From positions 8,122,001 through 8,186,000 of the forward strand of contig OZ281500.1 of the NCBI GenBank assembly GCA_965637545.1: DNA of 64,000 nt, written 5' to 3'. Both the position numbers and the translations under genes were made by a program. Positions 45,525 to 62,200 of this stretch are shown piece after piece (position 1 is the first letter of the stretch; each line of letters begins with the position of its first letter). Below the pieces are notes generated by a model. The model ran no database searches. It was given only the letters and a program-made list of their open reading frames with translations, and was not told where the DNA came from. This DNA comes from Phallusia mammillata. Taxonomy: Eukaryota.

Positions 45525-46177
45525 CAGTGGTGGGATTCAACATTTTGTCAGCCGGTTCTATCACAAAAGTCATATTTTTCACCTTGTTCTGTTACAAAAA
45601 GTAACCAGTAATGCTAACCGGTTTGCTGGTCCAGAGTTGCAAGCGGGCCCGAAATCTGAGCCCGAACCCGGCCCGAACCCGAAAGTATAAGCCCGAAGCC
45701 CGACCCGAACCCGAAACGTCTTTGAGAAGCCCGTTTAGGCCCGAAATTTTGATTGACAGGTCTATCCACGAAAGCCTTGCAACAAAGTATGAGAAAGAAA
45801 AAAGAGAAAAGACAACAAACACAATGAACAATAGTAGACAATGGGGTAAACAATACGTTTTAGACCAGGGTGGGCATTCGATCAAAGCGAGAGAATTGTT
45901 ACTAAAAAATGACGGAAACGGAACGTAAAGTCAGGCCCGTTTTGAGCCCGTTTTCTGACAAATACCTAAGCCCGAACCCGGCCCGAACCCGGCCCGAACC
46001 CGGCCCGAACCCGGCCCGAACCCGGCCCGAACCCGGCCCGAACCCGGCCCGAACCCGGCCCGAACCCGGCCCGAACCCGGCCCGAACCCGGCCCGAACCC
46101 GAACCCGGCCCGAAAAGCCCGGCCCGACTTGCAACTCTGTGCTGGTCTCATAAAAATTCGTGAGACGGTTCTATAGA
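45525..46177. mobile_element. Second copy of the CAGTGGTGGGATTCA MITE, interrupted by a nested element; right TIR lost
   Basis: 45525-45631 and 46140-46177 align colinearly with 19621-19770. Confidence 0.85.
45632..46139. mobile_element. 508-bp hAT-type MITE with an internal 11-bp tandem array, nested insertion
   Basis: TIRs CAGAGTTGCAAG / CTTGCAACTCTG; perfect TSD TGCTGGTC; 12 copies of GCCCGAACCCG at 45970-46101. Confidence 0.93.
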
Positions 46178-48903: not shown

Positions 48904-49739
48904 GTTTAAAATCTGAAAATACTGACACCTTGCGGATGTTTTGTCATCAGACCTATTCCTAATGTGCGTCACCTCGTGCCATCTTGGTTTGCTTCCGTGT
49001 TTGTCGTAAAGAAAAACATGAATTTGGCGTCACGATTAGCATTTGCCGTTACTGTATGTTTCAACACTTTGTTATATTTTTTTAATCGCCAAATTGGGTC
49101 GCTTCTGATCGTTTGCCTTCACTGTTGCTGTTATAATTGTTCCTTTGTCATACAGGTCTGATTACTAAAATTGCGATTATAGCACTACATGAAATTTAGT
49201 TTCTAGGCGCGGCATTCAAAGGAAATGAGATTCTTAATTATAGACAGTCCATAATAAAACACCACGGACAAAAAAACAAACAAACAATTTGTAGTTTTTT
49301 TGACTAAAACTTATGTTAATGAGTTCGGCTGCAACGAAAACGTAGTAACGGCAAACTTAATCACAAAAATGAACACAAAATCGAAGCAGTTTTAAATCAA
49401 ACCATTTGGGGAATCGATTTATGTATATGTACTCTATAGTCTGTGGTATCTGTTGGAGCACGTAACCTTAATATGATCAGACCCTACGTCACATACCAAG
49501 CAATCTCAAAAAATTGTATGTTAATTTGCCGTCTGTTGCCGTTTACCTCTTATCATAAAATAAACCCATTTTTACTAAGCGAATTAATCAATTTTTAACA
49601 AATTGCTAATCGACCAACAAAGACGTATAATCGTTCCAACCTCGACCTAAAAATCCAGTTATTTAATGTTATCTGACAAACGCTGTGTCTAAACTTGAAT
49701 GTCGTAAGGGTTATTTCAGCAATGGTAACATTGCAATGT

Positions 49740-52700
49740 ATGTTAACTGTATCTTTACTGTCACTATGTTACAAAACATATCCGGTCATTGTAGCAGAGG
49801 GGAGTAGAAACATAGAACACCAAGGCATTGATTTCGCCAGGGTTATGCCAAAGGGAAGGCAGAAACTAAAACCAAAAGTCATTGAGTCACAGTCTATCCA
49901 GAATGAAATTGTTAATGGTGATTTGTCAAAGATGGGCAACAACCAATCATTGTGGATTGATGGAGCGCGTTCTTGGCAAGCGTTAAACGCTTCTAGTACT
50001 GTTACAGGAAAAAACACGGGACCATTTCAAGCTTATTACATCACATGTAGGTATATGGTGTACATAAAATGCCCAAATGATTTCGTATACTGGTAGGCAC
50101 GTTTGGTATCACCTTTTTTTTAACTTTTTCAGCGTTTCCTTGCTCTAAATTGTGCTTGGGATGCCATTCGTGCTCCAACTATACCGGATCATGCATGTGT
50201 AGCTGTTACAATGGATTTACGTCAACAAGCGAAGGTGAATGTGAGCCAGGTAATATTGACATTTGTGTTATGATACTTGACCATAGCAGTTCGAGAATTT
50301 CCCGCCGTGATAAAGTTTGTTTTTGATTTTTTATTACTTTATTTGATTTTTTAAGTGTTTTTTTTTTCAATGTTAGCGAACTGATTAAGCGTTATTTTTT
50401 ATTTTATCTAGTTTACTGCCAAGGACATTCCATAAATTTTCCACAAGATACAAACATTGAGGTTTTGTTTCCAAGAACATTCGTTGGGTATAGAAATTTG
50501 TCGACAGACGTATGTCCTAGCGGCACCGTAAACAGTAAGTGTCAGCCGTATGAGTTCACTTTACAGCACATGCCGATCTGAAGCGAGTTTTTCTTCTTAC
50601 TAAACGTTGTAACAAAAAACGATGTACTTTGTTCACCTAATTCGACTCAATTACGATGTACGTTGAGCGTATATATCAGAGTTGCAAGTCGGGCCGGGTT
50701 CGGGTTCGGGCCGGGTTCTATAATATCACTCAGCTAAGTAACAATTCTCGAGCTTTGACCTAATGCCCACCCTACTCTAAAACGTATTGTTTACCCCATT
50801 GTCTACTATTGCTCATTGTGTTGGTTGTATTTTTTTCTTTCGCATCTTTTTTTGCAAGGCTTTCGTGGATAGGCCTGTCAATCAAAATTTCGGGCCTAAA
50901 CAGGCTTCTCAAAAACGTTTCGGGTTCGGGCCGGGTTCGGGCCGGGTTCGGGCCGGGTTCGGGCCGGGTTCGGGCCGGGTTCGGGCCGGGTTCGGGATCA
51001 GAATTCGGGCCCGCTTGCAACTCTGGTATATATAGTTTACTGTTTGATTTTGAAAATGAGTGATTAAATTAGTAACACGACCTTTAATTAAATCACCTCA
51101 TGTACCTTAAACCCCACTACTAAAATTATTATGCCCCCTACTCGCAATTTTTTCTGTCACTTTTTTAGTGTTACTTTGTGTTGTCGCAAGTTGAGTATCA
51201 TGACCAATTTCATTTCACTTTTGTCGGCTTGTTTTAAGGCGGAACACCCTATGCTATTCGAGAATGTCATTTGGATGGTTTTTGGGCTACCCCTGTGTGG
51301 TTATCATCATGTAATGCGCGGATTGAGGTTGGTTATCAGTTAAATGTTTTTTCTCAATCAGTCACAAACGATGTTTTATAAGGATTATCTTCACTCAACT
51401 ATAAACTCCAATGAACATCGACTTCAGGTGGCAAATGATCTGGAAGTAATGACATCACAACCAGTGCAACTACAAGCTTGCTTCATTACTGCTGTTTCGG
51501 AGATCCTTGCCAAAGTTGTGAATACACCAGTTTTGCCCATAAAGGTTTCGATATTTGTTCAAATTACTTAATTTAGGTAACATTTCTGCGTGGGCTTTAT
51601 AGGTTGCACAACTTTTTAATGCGACTGTTTTCTGTACAGAGTGCGCGAAAATGTGCACGTTAAAATGTGCGCACATTTTTCGAAAATTTTAGAGGCCAAA
51701 GTATATCTCAGTAAAACGAAGGCCATTGCCAAATTCTAAAGGTAAATTTGAAAAATCGTTTCGCCTTCTGTTGTTACTTGTAACTGAATGAAGTAATATT
51801 GTTCGACACAAAATATTTTTTACATTTAACATACATATACACTTATACAGTCGAACAACCTGACAAGTAATGATATTGTAGCAATTCGTCTAGGTTGTGG
51901 CGAAACGCCCTCCGAAAGTACTGCAAAATTACAACGTTTTCTTGAAAAACGTGATGGCTGAAAGACGATAATGCTTTAAGAAGGGAAGCTGAGATGGTCA
52001 AAGCAAATGTCTTCACAAGCCACTTTAACGATATATACTTTGTTTACGTATCTCGTGTTGTTTTCATAGCTTATGCCGTTTGTACGTTGATTAAACGGAC
52101 AAAATGGTTCATAGTTGCGTGGCTGTACGAGGATTTTTCATCGTTGACGCAAATCTACGGCATCTAGTTTATGCCACGTGTACATAATTACTTGATATAG
52201 TAATCTATCCATTCTAGTGTGTTTTGTCAAAATTTGGCCCCCGCTGAAAAAAATTCTGCCGGCGGCCTTGACTGTTATATGTAAACCATGTTAATTCAAA
52301 CACAATGCTTGTTTTCAAAGATTTCCAGCTCAGTCGCCGGGACAATCGGAAATATTTTAGATGCATCAGAGAAGGAAATTATAGCAAGCAAGCAATCAGA
52401 AAGGTTGAAACGTGATTGTAATTCACACCTTATCTCCTTTCGTGCTATGTCTCGTTACTACATAAGTTTAAACTAAACATAATTTAAACCAATTGTAGAT
52501 TGCTTGCAACTTTGCTTGCCTTGGGTGAAAACACGGAGCTGACTGAAGAGGAGTCGCGTTTGGACAAAGTTACGAAGTCCCTTGGTTTTTTTCTGTGTCC
52601 AATTTTGCATGGTTGTTTTTGCAAGTAATGCCAGCCAGTAAAGAAAATAACAAGCACCGTTTGCAGGATATTTTGACATTTATTTGGGTTTTATGCCCCG

Positions 52701-55700
52701 CCCCACACTACCAGCTGAGTTCGGATTTCGATTTGACCAATTTCATGCATTTTGGAACGATTACCCTCTCGGTGATGGTGCATCATACGTTGGATGTCCT
52801 CAAGAAGCTTGCGGCAAGTAAACGTTACCAACACGGCGATTTTTGCAAAATAGCAATTAAAAACTACCATATATATTTAAAGCAGAACTTTACCACTAAA
52901 CCATTATTTCTAAACGCAGATGGATATAGGACGCTATTTTACGCAATGCACGACGACAAGTTTTTTAAATCTGTCAGGCCTTATCAAAATCTAACATACG
53001 CTTCAGACGTTGTGTTATCAGTAAACGCTGTCGGAAAAAATACCACCAATATAACTTTGAAGTCGCCAATGAAAACGGAGTTTTCTCTGCAAAAGGTTTG
53101 TAAGAACTGTTTACTTCTGAACATACATTAATCCTCCAATGTAAACAGCCAAAATGCGTCTTACCAACTGGTGAATGGTCGAACTGACATTCCCCTTCTA
53201 CGAATATTACATGTGCAGCAAACAAGGCAGGCAACAGTGCTTATGGTACTACAGGCAGCAGACACAAAATATGTCTCTAATCCCCTTATTAAAAAATGCT
53301 AGAGTACAATACGTGATTCAGCTTTCGAAATTGCCTTCAATTTTATCAAACAGATATTTTTTTTCCATAATATTTTCAATTTGTGTATTTAGAAAAGCTG
53401 GTCTTAACAGAATATCCACACATTTTATTGACATGTACAGACCGATGCGATGGTTCGATTGAACGAAACTACATGTGGTTTTTGGGATTTATATGGGTGC
53501 TGGTCGACTGAAAAGGCCAGTGTTGTAGACATTACCAATCAATCTGTCACATGCGAGTTTTCTCAGTATGTCAGCACTTTCGCCGCATTTTCCGTAAGTA
53601 TTTTCCGGTTACATTGCAAAGTAGCAAATCGTTCAAAGTTAACAACCCCAAGTTTCTAGTACAACAGAGATCTTGCTGTTGCCACAGAAACAACGCACAT
53701 CAAAAGCTCACCCACCAAATTGTGCGACTGGACAATCACAAGTGAGTGTGCAAAATTTTCTTTGTGAACCTTCGTTTAAAAACAACTGGTTCTCTGAAAA
53801 CATTTGACAAAAGTTGATGTTTGTACTTCCCATCTTTCACAATCGATAAAATTCCATTCACTGTCAACTTAACGTCACAAAACATGAATTTAAACAAATC
53901 AGCTTCTTGCTATAATGCACAAATTTAAACAAAATACTATTGCTATAATGCACAAAAGCAGTGGTTAATAATTATTAGTTATAATTATAATCCGCAATAG
54001 CATCGTGTTTTTTAAATAGATAATTTTTAGGTACTTATTTTGTTCAACAACCCTTGCACAGTCTTGCACATCATAAGACACGTTAATTTTGTATTTTTGG
54101 ACTGATGTTAATAGTTCATCGTACTGTTTTACAGCTCGATGCGATGAAGTTTATGTTGTGTATCCATTTGATCAAAACATAAATGTTTGGTTTCCTTCGA
54201 CCGCCGCAGGATACTCAAATTCATCTTCAACTGTTTGTTCAACAAACACATTAAACTGTACGTGATCATTTTATTGAGTGACAATAACACCACTTTTGCT
54301 CACCACGTTAGTTCATCAGCAATGAACAAATTATGAAATGAACTATTTTAGATGGCAAACCATACGGTGTACGAGACTGCAGCATTAAAGCGGTTTGGGA
54401 AAAGCCAACATGGTTGTCGTCTTGTAATGTGCAGTTGAAGGTAACATTTGCTCTTTTTTGGTCTGTGTTAAAGCACACTTTTCAAAACCATTGCTATTTG
54501 TAAAAAAGGACTATGTAAACGCGACAATCGAAACAGAGGAAGGTCGGCAGCAGGTTGCAAACGATCTGGAAGTAATAACATCAGACCCGGGACAACTGCA
54601 AGCGGAAAGTCTTACGATCATCGTCGATGTTCTTGACCAAGTTGTCGATGCACCCACTTTAAGCAAAAATGTTCGGGTTTTACGAATAGTCGTGTATAGC
54701 TTATGTAGCTTACTGCAATAAATTTTTGTGAACTTAAAACCAATTACGTCTTTCCACTTAAAACTTAATTTCATGTTATGTCAGACGTCAAGTTCAGTTG
54801 TTGGCACAATTGGAAATATCTTGGAAGCACCTGAAGAAGAAATCAAGGCAAGCCACATTTCATGGAGGTAAGTTGAACAGTGATTTAACTATTGGTTAAG
54901 TTCTCTCATTTCTGTTCTTAACGGAAGAATAAATATATTTAACCGCAAACACTATGTAGAATGCTTGAAACTTTGGACACCGTGGCTGAAAAAGTAGAAT
55001 TAATAGAAGGAGAGAAGTTTGAAGAAGTGACAAGCTCTATGGCATTTGCTGTTGCTCAACCCTTTCTACAAGGTAATCTGCAATTGGCACCTCAATCGAT
55101 GTGATTATCAAAATCCTGATATCTGCAGATGCTCAATGTGGAATTGGTTACGAAGTTCTATCTATGACAAATGTTCAAGAACCTGGTTTTCGATCCGACC
55201 AATTGGACATTTTTTATGGTCAGTCGAGTGACAGAGCGACCTCATACATCAAAATTCCCTACCAAGCAAGTTTCCAGAGCTTAGGTAAACGCGCTTGTGA
55301 AATATTTGACTAATGTTAATTAAAAGCGGAAATTACATTGGTCAATATCATTTCCAAAGTGTTTTTAAGACAAAACCTTATAACGATCGTTTTTACTTGT
55401 ACAGGTACATATCGAACGAGCTTCTACGCAATGTCCGACGACAAACTTTTTTCCACTGCTGAAACCAATCAACGTCGGGGTGCAAATTTACAATACACTT
55501 CAAATGTCGTGTTATCAGCAACTGTTGTTGGAAGTAACGGCAAAGTTGGACATCTACAACAGCCTGTTGAAATACAATTTTCCTTAAAGGTGAGAACTTT
55601 CTTGGATCTGCTAATTGTCATCTGTTGCTGATCTGTAATGGTTTTTAACCCTTTTTAGACAAAAAATGCTCATATGTATGCAGACAAAAGCACGTATTGC

Positions 55701-57374
55701 GGTTTTTGGAATTTTGATGCTTGGTTAACAGACGGACTGTCGATTGCGAGAGTCGACAACCAAGCAATCACTTGTTACTCTAACCATCTTACCAATTTTG
55801 CTGCTTTGTTTGTGAGTTCAGTTGTTAAAGTCTTTAAAATGATAAACCATGTGAAAAACTTTTTTTTGAAAAAACTTAGAACAGTAACTACGTGGACTCG
55901 ACAGCGATTGACCTTATCACATTGGTTGGGTGTAGCATTTCCAGCGTATGTCTGATGATAACTGTTTTGGAGTTCATAATTTACAAGTACGCAAGAATAT
56001 GTGAACATTTCTATTTTGAAGTATTACCCAATATTCATTTTCCCTTTCAGACCCAGTCGAAAAGAAAAGAAATTTCGAAGTGCTTTTCTTCTTACTAATC
56101 TTTCCTTGTCACTTTTGTTTTTTAACGTCGACTTGATTCTCAGTGGACAGGATTTTGTGCAAAAATCAGTAAACGGCTGTCTATCGATTGCGGTCCTTAC
56201 ACACTTTTTTATGTTATCTTCGATGGGTTGGATGTTAGTGGAAGGCACTACTTTTTTTCTAGCTCTTGCATTCGTAAATATGCTTTGTTGTCGATACGAT
56301 ATAAATGCATTGTAGCTTTTCACAAACGATTATGTATTTTTTAGCCTTTTTGGTACAAAAGTTTACCGACATCTAAAACAATTTTGATCCCTGCTTGTAT
56401 TGTCGGGTGGCTGCTTCCAGCAGTTTTTGTTTCCTGCATTTTAGCTGTCAACAAAAGTCTATACATTCGCATAGACTATACGTAAGTATTGTAGATGATA
56501 AAGCACTATTACTATTTATAAAGTGGTAATTGTCCGATTTTTAGATGCTGGATACACGATGAATACTTGCTGTTCTTTGTCGCGATTCCTGTTTGCATTT
56601 TAATTGGCATAAACTTGATTCTTTACGTGATGATAGTTTATCATGTGATGTGCAAGCGAAACATAAAGGTATTAATACGCTTTGGGAATTTTGACTGATA
56701 AATAACTGAATATGTTGTCCGCTTTAGGGTTCAAATAACGGTAATCGATCCACACGAAACGCAATGATTTCACTCACGCTTTTCGTGACACTTGGTGGAA
56801 CTTGGCTATTTGCAATAGCACTTGTAGCATCAGACGAGGAACTGGTGGTGCTGGAAGTTTTCGCTTTCATATTTACAATATTAAACTCCCTACAAGGTTA
56901 GTATTTAATAGGTTATTAAATTATGTCAAAAGTATCTAATCATTCATGTAGACTCGCTTATAACAGCTACGCAGGTATGTTCACCTACTGATTACAATTT
57001 GTTGTTTGTGCACGTACCACGGTTTAAAAAAGTTTGCGTATTTTTTGTTTAATGATCTTTTACATTTATATAAAGGTTTGATATGATACAATCTTTAGGT
57101 GTTTGTCTTTTTGTTTTGTACGTGATGCGTCAAAACTATCTGGCAGAAATCGCACAACTGGTAAAAGCTCGAAGAGTCCTGTCGGTGTCGGGTCGGTATG
57201 TAGACTACTATTCGGCTTTCTTTTTTCATCGCAATATAAAATGTTTTTTTTTTACACTCTGTCCTATTACTTAGAAAACATGAAGATCTTCCATTGAAAG
57301 AAAGCAAAAACACTAAAATTGCGTTTTCGACATGTTCCTCGAGCAGCGGTTTTGAAACATCCATGACTAATTAA
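49740..57374 (+). CDS. Adhesion GPCR: C-type-lectin-like remnant, EGF-like domain, HRM-GAIN, linker, HRM-GAIN(GPS), 7TM; N-terminal start uncertain
   Basis: In-phase exons. EGF-like (CSKLCLGCHSCSNYTGSCMCSCYNGF). Module 1: 50412-50534, 51239-51327, 51383-51544, 52321-52403 … GPS 53441-53593. Linker 53660-53741. Module 2: 54135-54257, 54352-54440, 54509-54670, 54785-54867 … GPS 55659-55811 (CGFW…TCYSNHLTNFAALF). Family-2 7TM exons follow (ITLVGCSIS, HFFMLSSMGWMLVEG, GWLLPA, CWI, LGGTWLF, NSLQG), with stop at 57374. Confidence 0.85.
50677..51025. mobile_element. 349-bp copy of the CAGAGTTGCAAG MITE, inverted relative to 45632-46139, in an intron of the adhesion GPCR
   Basis: Same TIRs; perfect TSD GTATATAT; internal sequence aligns with copy 1; about 6-7 CGGGTTCGGGC units at 50921-50996. 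Confidence 0.93.
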
Positions 57375-59226: not shown

Positions 59227-62200
59227 TTATCGATTAGCTGCACGATCTCTATCTTTCAAAGATGGTCGAGGAATCTGGACAGCAAGAGACATCCAGTCCG
59301 ACACTTCAGTAGAAGGAATGGTGTAATTGGCACCTGACCTCGTGGCACCCATGTCACTCCTTGTTGACTGCTGTGGCTGCTTTTTGTTTGGGCCAACTTT
59401 GTGTCGCACGACAAACAGCAGGAACAGGAATAAACCTGAGGCACAAACGGGAAAGAGGCCATTAGGAAATATCACAATGCGTTTTGTTGGATGAGATAGA
59501 ACTGACTGTTCACATACAACACCATCCCGAACTCTAAGGATGACAATGCAATTGTTAACATACTATTCTTTTAAATATTAACCAGTAACAACACACTAAA
59601 TTATTTCTTCAAAGTACAGATTGGTTGTGCCAAGTGTTGGTAATAACGCGATATTTTCCAAGTTTGTTGTCTATAGTGAACAACTTAGTATTTAAGGGTT
59701 TACCTTGAAGGGAATTTAGTATTGCAAAAATGTATGCAAACACAGTGGCTAAGGTGTCCGATGTTCCAGAAAGCAAAACGATGGCAAAGATCCAGGTTCC
59801 ACCCATGGCCACAAACAAAGCAAGTGACAACAATAAGTCAGCCAGTCCGCGGTCCTGCCCTCTCGCAGCAGCCTGCAATGGCATTGTTCGGGTTGGACAT
59901 GTGTTAAACCAAAGCACGGATTATTTAGACACATGCCATAAACACGGAGTTTGTTTAATTAAGTCTGTTTTATAAGCCAGTATGTCATTGTTACATGTGA
60001 AAGTGTTTACGGTTCAGGCAAAATGTTGTTCATAACCTACCGGTCTGTGTCTCCTGCGCTGACGAAAGTAGAGGAACATGACGGCAATGTAAAGTGCCAG
60101 ATTTAGACCAATAATGATAGAGAATGGAATCACGACAAAGTAGATGATTCCACTTTCGGTAATCCAGCAACTAAATACATAAAATTCAAAACAACCGTTC
60201 ATAATTTGTCTGTTTCATTTCATAAGTTTTCTATAATATACTAATCCAAAAAGTAAACATTTTTTCAACCAATTTTCAGAACGTAACAAGGGGGTATGAA
60301 TTTGAATACAGCAAAACCAACCTCTGATATAAATGAAGTGATGCGTTAATTTACAAATATTTTATAAGACTTACATATCTCCATTGCGATAGGTTTCAGC
60401 ATCAACGCCAACCACTACAGAAACAAAAATCGCCGGCAGCAACCAAGCGCAGACAGTTGAGATTGCAAACAGATTTCTGTTCTTCATGCCACGGTTCATG
60501 TAAAAAGGCTAAAAACAAATGTTGTCAAAACTGTGTGGAACTTGGAAAAAACATTGCAACACAGCACCAAGCTAAGTTTATTTTCTTTTGTTATGGAGGC
60601 CAATTTAAAAGTGCAAACACAATTTCTAAATAATAATAGCATTAAAGTACATGGTTAACCATTAATAATGTTTGTAGAGGTAAGAGGTAGGTGGTTTCGC
60701 AGCACAGCGTCAGGGTGTTTAGCATTCGGTAAAAAAACAGTAAACATGCTCTTAGCACGAGCCTAAATATCACTTACGAAAGCGATTGTAATGAAAAACA
60801 TCACTCCTTCTACCAGCATCCAGGCCAGTGAGCTGAACATGAAGAAATGGATAAAAACTGCGATTGAAAGGCATGCGTCAGGGGACAAGTACACAAAATC
60901 CATCTCACTGAGCAGCATTGAAACGTTCAAAAGAAGAAGGGAGACGGCTAGATTTACCATTAGAAACGAGGTCCGACCTTTTCCTTGGGTGCGAGTTTTT
61001 CTGTGAAATTCAATTTGAATGTATCTCAATTTTGTTCTGAACCAATACTCTTACACTTTGTTAATTTTAAAACGCCTCATAGACTGGATAATTCTCTACA
61101 TAACAAGCAAGTTTAGTCAGTTAAAACGGAAGCACTTACTTGTCAAATGTGAACCAAAGTATAGTTGCGAGCAAAGCAAAAAGCGAGATCGAACAACCGA
61201 TAATCGTTATTAGATCCAATGCTCTTGAGTCATTGAAATTGGGATTCTGAAAGTGGTAACCAAGTTATAAAAATACATCAAACTATGATTGTTTGTGAGA
61301 CACTTACAAATAATGCTGCAAAGTTTGTCAAATGGGAAAATTCGCAAGTTATTGTGTTGTTCATCACTTCAGTCACACTGGCACCTTCTGTTGACCAATC
61401 GAGACCGTCCCAGAAGCCACAGCTGGTATTCAATTCACTGTAGGTTTGAGTCCCCTGTGATTTGATAAACGTTATGTGCCCGATACAGAATAATATACTT
61501 TGTGTTACCTGTGCTTGGAGAGCAAATTTCATTTCAACAGGTGGATTTAGGTCCTTGGTTGAGGTTGCGTTCGGCAACGAAGCCGAAAGAACTACTGACG
61601 AATTGTAAGTCCAGCCATTGCTTCCAGCACTTGGAAACAAGGCGTCATCAATAAGAGCGTAAAAACTGACGCGCTGGTTGTCTGTTTGTAACGTACAATA
61701 TGTCAAATGTTTGTGCATAAATTTAAAACTATCTTTGATTATTAAATTGGCGGTTATCCTACAATTGTGTGACGTCTAAACTCAAAATGTTTTGTTCACT
61801 TTTCAAATGGATGACAACATATATTACTTTTATACTTATCCCTAAATCGTTACTAATATAAATGGGATTTTTAGCCTGATTTAACACACAAGTAAAATCA
61901 TGTGTTTTGTTGTTTGCAAACCTCCACTTAACAAAGCTTGGGGTATGTTGATGTATGCAGAAAAATTTTCTGTAGATCCGTCATCAAATGTCGTTAGCTG
62001 ATCGGAACGAAACCCCAATTCTTGTAGGGTGCTTAAATCCAAAACACCGTAACCGACACCGACTGAACTCCGTAAACCTAAAAAACGCACGTTCAATTGA
62101 AAAAATACAAGTTTATTTTTAGTAGTCTTGCCTGCTGTGGTAGGTTCGACAACTGCCATGGCAAGGGTGCTCGTCACTTCTTGATACTGTCCAGTTTCGT

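Follow-up and report, generated by a model that had tools for sequence, protein, structure and literature searches.

An open question for adhesion GPCRs (G protein-coupled receptors) is whether the GAIN domain's self-cleavage at its GPS motif matters in itself, or only in that it frees a tethered agonist beside the seven-transmembrane (7TM) region. The question is raised by a receptor gene of Phallusia mammillata that lies at 49722-57374 on the plus strand of the window, the 64,000-nucleotide (nt) stretch analysed here (contig OZ281500.1 of assembly GCA_965637545.1, positions 8,122,001 to 8,186,000), and in which two homologous GAIN-GPS modules precede one 7TM region. The gene model was built by hand and comprises 26 exons, designated A, B, C to J (module 1), K, C2 to J2 (module 2) and T1 to T7, which form an uninterrupted open reading frame of 1196 amino acids (aa) when the putative exon K is included. 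The GPS motif of the upstream module (GPS1) has lost the HL/T motif, and we hold with moderate confidence that the locus encodes a two-module receptor in which a catalytically dead upstream GAIN domain is selectively maintained within a single adhesion-GPCR gene.

The exon that encodes GPS1 (exon J, 53441-53593, plus strand, frame 2, flanked by tgtacag as acceptor and gtaagt as donor) also carries the last beta strands of the first GAIN domain, and its translation, TDAMVRLNETTCGFWDLYGCWSTEKASVVDITNQSVTCEFSQYVSTFAAFS, ends in the letters TCEFS-QYVSTFAAFS. The corresponding exon of module 2 (exon J2) ends in TCYSN-HLTNFAALF (ITCYSNHLTNFAALF), with HLT encoded by CAT CTT ACC at 55785-55793, and that of a neighbouring convergent adhesion GPCR, which serves as the reference state (61308-61454, minus strand), ends in TCEFS-HLTNFAALF (TCEFSHLTNFAALF); direct reading of the DNA thus returned all three endings as an earlier note on this stretch had given them. 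In GPS1 the codons CAG TAT GTC AGC ACT (53564-53578, plus strand), encoding QYVST, replace H-L-T-N, with the consequence that the motif has no histidine base, is longer by one residue and still has a serine at the +1 position. Relative to both HLT copies, cat has become cag, ttg or ctt has become tat, gtc has been added, aca or acc has become agc, and aac or aat has become act, amounting to a 3-nt in-frame insertion and no fewer than six substitutions in the region of the triad; the loss is thus an old one, reached in several steps and not by a single recent hit. The Pfam GPS profile (PF01825, cut-off 22.5 bits) scores 33.9 bits for GPS2 and 35.9 bits for the neighbour, and 15.5 bits for GPS1, although the CxxW...W...TC pattern is present in the latter. 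The positions that form the fold are retained in GPS1 (CGFW including the Phe, WST, TC and FAAF) and the changes are concentrated at the catalytic site, where Q-Y-V-S departs from the catalytic H-x-S/T triad in having no histidine and one inserted residue. This triad is a mark of competence to cleave and not of the fold, and it is likewise missing from ADGRB3 (BAI3). In an alignment, the position of the base is taken by Q when the motif is anchored N-terminally and by Y when it is anchored C-terminally; when aligned with the solved ADGRE5, in which HLS matches HLT, GPS1 has a Lys in place of the Gly of the Gly-Cys motif (TEGC).

These differences bear directly on the published mechanism, in which the GPS histidine deprotonates the Ser/Thr nucleophile and is itself positioned by a conserved Phe and the Gly-Cys motif (PMC13062082), the scissile bond being located in a sharply bent loop that precedes the last strand (PMC13197933). 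In fact, ADGRB3, which has RLS at its GPS, is uncleaved and an R855H substitution partly restores cleavage, and even canonical HLS sites such as that of ADGRB2 often fail to cleave (PMC13062082). GPS1 is therefore very probably not self-cleaved, because it offers no histidine base, carries an extra residue in the loop and has a Lys at the Gly of Gly-Cys, and the proposal in the earlier note that motif loss had rendered this domain uncleavable is well supported by the sequence and the published mechanism. Membrane tethering and the first transmembrane helix (TM1) have been reported to promote cleavage (PMC12488864), and therefore a GAIN domain placed approximately 380 aa from TM1 would face relaxed selection for cleavage. 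The two-disulfide anchor of the motif (CxC and Gly-Cys) is incomplete in GPS1, GPS2 and the neighbour GPS, which show C-x-F/S plus G-A, G-L or K-A at these positions, so that one disulfide pair has been lost across the receptor family. Two of the three GPS motifs without the second conserved disulfide keep HLT, and the family may cleave with a single disulfide. An extra Cys has been gained in GPS1 at YGCW.

GPS1 closes a unit that is matched exon by exon further downstream. Module 1 begins with exons C (50412-50534), D (51239-51327), E (51383-51544), F (52321-52403), G (52499-52611), H (52667-52813) and I (52920-53095), which span 50412-53095 on the plus strand and code for both GAIN subdomains, A and B, together with a GPR128_N-like domain, and module 2 begins with exons C2 (54135-54257), D2 (54352-54440), E2 (54509-54670), F2 (54785-54867), G2 (54960-55072), H2 (55129-55284) and I2 (55405-55589), at 54135-55589 on the same strand. 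Six exon pairs are equal in size (C/C2 123 nt, D/D2 89, E/E2 162, F/F2 83, G/G2 113 and J/J2 153) and the other two differ by 9 nt (H 147 and H2 156; I 176 and I2 185); exons F to J of the neighbour follow the same plan, with 83, 113, 156, 173 and 147 nt. At the protein level the two modules are 41% identical over approximately 350 aa (E=5e-86). The GAIN fold predicted for module 1, a helical subdomain A with a beta-sandwich subdomain B, is supported by this homology and by a weak match of exon E to the Pfam profile GPR128_GAIN_subdomA (18.3 bits). Module 1 contains 11 Cys and module 2 contains 7; one further Cys in exon K would bring the former to an even 12, which is only suggestive.

The divergence between the modules has the pattern expected of coding sequence under constraint. 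Identity at codon positions 1, 2 and 3 is 61%, 67% and 43%, respectively, and the rate of nonsynonymous change (dN) is 0.48 against a synonymous rate (dS) of about 1.9, which is near saturation, giving a dN/dS of about 0.26. In a neutral simulation at 0.1 substitutions per site, a frame of 1.05 kb stayed open in 0.5% of the trials. The codon-position pattern, dN/dS and simulation are the grounds on which a reading of module 1 as a pseudogene was rejected, and it is, on these measures, a complete eight-exon unit under purifying selection. Over 214 columns shared by module 1, module 2 and the neighbour, 42 residues occur in module 1 alone, where the corresponding counts for the two remaining copies are 24 and 27, and with the neighbour taken as outgroup the excess of changes gives a chi-square of 4.9; module 1 thus evolves faster, although the constraint on it is clear. 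Identity among the three copies is about even (41%, 39% and 47%), which suggests either that the duplication is as old as the gene duplication that gave rise to the neighbour, or that the gene is a fusion of two tandem paralogues. The K-C2 intron holds, at 53779-53916, a sequence interrupted by one stop that shows a weak resemblance to the last part of exon A followed by exon B (KTTGS...YFPSF...SCYN), one that is non-significant (E=0.13); a genuine match would mean that an N-terminal exon of a second gene has decayed here, in favour of an origin by fusion of paralogues.

We hypothesize that GPS1 closes a complete but dead GAIN module, consisting of a GPR128_N-like region and GAIN subdomains A and B, located upstream of a canonical GAIN-GPS-7TM unit, and that the two modules, whether derived from an old duplication or from the fusion of two tandem paralogues, are most likely spliced into one 1196-aa receptor by way of a short Ser/Thr-rich bridging exon. 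The membrane-proximal GAIN domain alone would keep H-L/T and cleave itself, so that the receptor would consist of two fragments, as is usual, with TNFAALF as the tethered agonist. The upstream GAIN domain, which retains the residues of the fold (CGFW, WST, TC and FAAF) without the histidine base and the loop geometry, would remain uncleaved and would persist as a folded extracellular module of the N-terminal fragment, with a possible role in spacing, binding or force bearing.

The bridging exon is the step on which this arrangement depends. The block of module exons begins in phase 1 and ends in phase 0, therefore a direct join of J to C2 shifts the frame, and a protein with two GAIN domains would require a bridging exon of 3n+1 nt. 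The putative exon K (53660-53741, plus strand, 82 nt, YNRDLAVATETTHIKSSPTKLCDWTIT), which runs from phase 0 to phase 1, has the required length and frame, its donor, gtgagt, is good (score 5.0), and the intron that separates it from exon J, of 66 nt, is of a length common in this gene. GPS1 is not followed by a hydrophobic segment; what comes next in the coding order is either the putative exon K or module 2. Neither a credible exon with an ATG and signal peptide nor an AATAAA or ATTAAA was found between J and C2, and an independent start for module 2 or an independent end for module 1 was rejected on the lack of a signal-peptide exon and of a poly(A) signal in this interval. Likewise, a sensitive tblastn search of the same interval, which looked for relics of exon A, exon B or the 7TM exons, returned only non-significant hints, the best with E=0.014 over 8 residues on the opposite strand. 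The weak point is that the placing of GPS1 as distal hinges on both modules being joined in one polypeptide through exon K; in the description of this GAIN domain as an uncleavable distal spacer, which the earlier note had put forward, it is the word uncleavable that stands well, and distal and spacer depend on splicing through this putative exon.

Several observations weigh against a two-module receptor with an uncleaved upstream GAIN domain. As regards splicing, the module block is not phase-symmetric and a direct J-to-C2 join meets a stop after 15 codons. The acceptor of exon K scores -1.9 on a position weight matrix derived from the other splice sites of the gene, compared with 0.6 to 12.6 for the other exons, and exon K is one of 12 open candidates of 3n+1 nt among 197 AG..GT pairs. 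Aligned as DNA and as protein with T1, with T1 of the neighbour and with exon B, exon K scored no better than shuffles (p=0.36, 0.43 and 0.04, respectively). Within module 1 itself, splicing requires a GC donor (gcaagt, 52814-52819) after exon H and, after exon G, a donor that is weak (GTTGTT). Among the sequencing runs searched, none that is on record as RNA contains the locus, and two presumed-RNA runs match it only in intronic repeats, at 51648-51687 and 53209-53247. With regard to precedent, every GAIN domain analysed has been reported to lie immediately before TM1 (PMC3321182), and a profile of the three GPS exons found no close relative among 1.84 billion representative proteins, the best single-domain match scoring about 38 bits, where the gene's own sequence scores 89-99 bits. 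Finally, GPS1 still has a Ser at +1, a feature compatible with residual cleavage.

The rule that a GAIN domain directly precedes TM1 does not hold for module 1 unless exon J is joined to T1, which leads to the alternative that survives best. The two modules may be mutually exclusive cassettes, one transcript running from A and B through module 1 to the 7TM region (814 aa, non-cleavable) and the other through module 2 (820 aa, cleavable), while transcripts with both would be out of frame and subject to nonsense-mediated decay; in this case GPS1 would have the proximal and not the distal position. We consider this unlikely, albeit worth serious attention. Skipping of either module keeps the frame: the B-to-C2 join is in frame and gives an 820-aa receptor, and the J-to-T1 join is in frame and gives one of 814 aa, both intact, in contrast with the premature stop of the direct J-to-C2 join, and such incompatibility of frames is the classical means by which mutual exclusion is enforced. 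An arrangement of this kind would also preserve the position of GAIN before TM1 (PMC3321182), and it agrees with the selection found on both modules and with the weakness of the bridging exon. On the other hand, it would require the regulated skipping of 8-9 consecutive exons with good splice sites, and exon J, whose donor (gtaagt) is strong, would be expected to splice to the K or C2 acceptor close by. In the would-be tethered agonist of GPS1 the +7 position is a Ser and not the hydrophobic Phe (STFAAFS, compared with TNFAALF of the HLT copies). Moreover, three nearly equidistant modules are more in keeping with fused paralogues than with a local duplication of exons, and contiguous tandem GAIN units occur in predicted proteins of other animals. 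Mutually exclusive exons that are incompatible in frame are exemplified by IIIb and IIIc of FGFR2, each of which is in frame with its flanks, while both together shift the frame; the unit here differs in being an 8-exon, 3.2-kb block, read from the DNA sequence. If cassettes were true, one gene would toggle between a self-cleaving (HLT) and a non-cleavable (QYVST) receptor with the same 7TM region, a natural, genetically encoded switch of adhesion-GPCR autoproteolysis.

Rather less probable still is that module 1 stands outside the functional receptor, either as a recently disabled duplicate, in which the GT donor of exon H (leading to a stop in exon I) or the direct J-to-C2 join would produce a premature stop, or as the source of a truncated, secreted product with a GAIN domain only. 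The donor in question, an ancestral-looking gtaaac shared with H2, is located downstream of the exon H GC donor, at a distance of 5 nt, and its use would shift the frame; together with the weak acceptor of exon K, it speaks for a module that no longer functions. However, all eight exons of the module, including I and J beyond the suspect donor, are open despite a dS near saturation. Furthermore, exon G of the neighbour, whose size of 113 nt is conserved, likewise requires a GC donor (gcaaga, 62131-62132, minus strand), from which GC-AG introns appear to occur in this receptor family. As for a secreted product, adhesion-GPCR isoforms without the 7TM region are reported in a preprint (bioRxiv 10.1101/2023.01.11.521585), but the absence of AATAAA and ATTAAA between J and C2 argues against such an end here.

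Cleavage of GPS1 between Val and Ser by a mechanism independent of histidine, which would yield three fragments and a second Stachel-like peptide, is very improbable. The serine at +1 and the hydrophobic strand FAAF are kept, which speaks for such cleavage, but the general base is absent, the cleavage loop holds one additional residue, the Gly of Gly-Cys is gone and GPS1 is not adjacent to the membrane (PMC12488864). The precedents point the same way, given that HLS sites such as ADGRB2 are often uncleaved and the RLS site of ADGRB3 is uncleaved (PMC13062082). The earlier note had allowed for a cut at this bond with a second Stachel; without a general base, and with no 7TM pocket after GPS1, this suggestion is not upheld.

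It is scarcely credible that QYVST, or the two modules lying side by side, are artefacts of assembly or sequencing, the circumstance that the earlier note named as fatal to its proposal, since exon J is identical in read-derived contigs, a de novo Logan contig of 3285 nt from two runs spans 52183-55467 with a single mismatch (55232) and none in 53441-53593, and an in-frame 3-nt insertion plus several substitutions is unlike an error pattern. The same contig also confirms the spacing of 541 nt between GPS1 and the first exon of module 2 downstream, support that is not fully independent, as the two DNA runs belong to one study and possibly to the source sample of the assembly. The window contains no N, has a G+C content of 38% and is intron-bearing eukaryotic DNA.

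The proposed two-module receptor can be compared with several known or predicted systems. Like GPS1, ADGRB3/BAI3 has a folded GAIN domain in which the catalytic His has been replaced, and it is naturally uncleaved, with the last strand held in the fold (PMC13062082, PMC3321182); in contrast, the sole GAIN domain of BAI3 directly precedes TM1, and GPS1 additionally shows a one-residue insertion in the cleavage loop and no longer has the Gly of Gly-Cys. By itself, a lost triad is common and ordinary, as BAI3 illustrates, and it is the upstream position that is unusual. A parallel in architecture comes from the clam Mactra antiquata (KAL4233862.1, P0050), with two GAIN domains and two GPS motifs before one 7TM region, built from a 440-aa repeat that is 64% identical. 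Its distal site, HLG, has also lost a catalytic residue and its proximal site is HLT; however, the units are directly adjacent, the duplication is younger, and the nucleophile has been lost instead of the base. This protein is approximately 25% identical to the receptor described here and is itself only a gene prediction. In the ostracod Darwinula stevensoni (CAG0884253.1), three GPS motifs, all HLT, are found in a 287-aa repeat that is 65% identical, and in the catfish Tachysurus vachellii (XP_060742127.1) six motifs, all HMT, in a repeat of about 300 aa that is 39-87% identical. Both resemble the Phallusia gene in their serial GPS/GAIN units and single 7tm_2 domain, and differ from it in that H-M/L-T is kept in every unit. 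An ADGRE5-like protein of the catshark Scyliorhinus canicula has two GPS motifs, of which the distal one is partial and reads NRLS. These multi-GPS proteins of catfish, ostracod, clam and catshark (P0001, P0002, P0050 and P0051) are uncharacterised predictions, and they indicate that serial GAIN units are not unique to this locus and that loss of the distal site recurs without being universal. In the open-access literature searched, no paper on adhesion GPCRs was found that deals with a second GAIN domain, with two, tandem or multiple GAIN domains, or with two GPS domains or motifs.

Within the adhesion GPCRs, the receptor shows likeness to ADGRG7/GPR128. GPR128_N matches exon C weakly (15.0 bits, cut-off 27.2) and GPR128_GAIN_subdomA matches exons E and E2 (18-19 bits, cut-off 22), scores below the Pfam cut-offs that were obtained on single exons, which are short for the test. 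Furthermore, the second-best BLAST match, the homologue P0083 (26% identity), consists of GPR128_N, GAIN, GPS and 7tm_2. Identity to receptors of the ADGRG7/GPR128 type is only 25-30%, and a P. mammillata receptor from the database, the fifth-best match in the library, is approximately 25% identical to this gene. We therefore regard the family as a probable lineage-specific, ADGRG7-like group, and liken it to the "unclassified adhesion" receptors of Ciona, where the lineage-specific receptors have been described with a single GPS (PMC2396169).

The remainder of the gene has the organization of an adhesion GPCR (class B2). Exon A (49722-50046, plus strand, in the hand-built model) contains the start codon, a predicted signal peptide and an N-terminal region of approximately 80 aa in which Pfam gave no significant domain, and exon B (50133-50249, plus strand) encodes a Cys-rich, EGF-like segment with 8 Cys and ends in a phase 1 donor that suits the acceptors of both C and C2. 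Exon J2, which carries GPS2 (55659-55811, plus strand), lies directly before the TM1 exon, from which it is separated by a 68-nt intron, and the protein reads HLTNFAALF-NSNYVDSTAIDLITLVG across this junction. The 7TM region and the tail are encoded by exons T1 to T7 (55880-57374, plus strand), namely T1 (55880-55986), T2 (56051-56273), T3 (56345-56481), T4 (56545-56668), T5 (56728-56896), T6 (57099-57195) and T7 (57275-57374, stop included). The Pfam 7tm_2 profile scores 29.3 bits on exon T2 (cut-off 20.6), six or seven hydrophobic segments are found in the model, and the database homologues P0083 and P0073 align across the 7TM region; a 7tm_2 domain with a GAIN/GPS unit, that of GPS2, immediately N-terminal of TM1 is what defines this class.

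Some further features of the locus were recorded. At 55448-56001 the read contigs give two versions of the sequence, with 7 differences per 170 nt and each at about half depth, which alter the residues A4T, H5D, A21T and R31T of the GPS2 exon and leave HLT unchanged; both are at full depth over 55448-55579, which suggests a paralogous copy elsewhere and not alleles. A minisatellite with an 11-nt unit, (GGGCCGGGTTC)n, occurs at 50900-50990, in the intron between C and D, and at 45950-46130, upstream of the gene, and is open on both strands (GPGSGRVRAGF...). Dispersed intronic repeats, with a word depth of thousands-fold in the DNA runs, lie at 51598-51796, 51996-52393 and 53190-53388.

The locus offers a natural comparison for the adhesion GPCRs, in which two homologous GAIN modules are both under selection and the catalytic site is kept only in the one adjacent to TM1. 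If both are part of one protein, the GAIN fold can be retained in an ordinary extracellular module away from the membrane, where it then loses its function as a protease, in agreement with the recent evidence that membrane tethering promotes cleavage. The predicted proteins of the clam and the catshark share this pattern of distal loss, whereas those of the catfish and the ostracod do not. Whether the modules are joined in one receptor or used as alternatives, either reading contradicts or tests the published rule that the GAIN domain lies directly before TM1.

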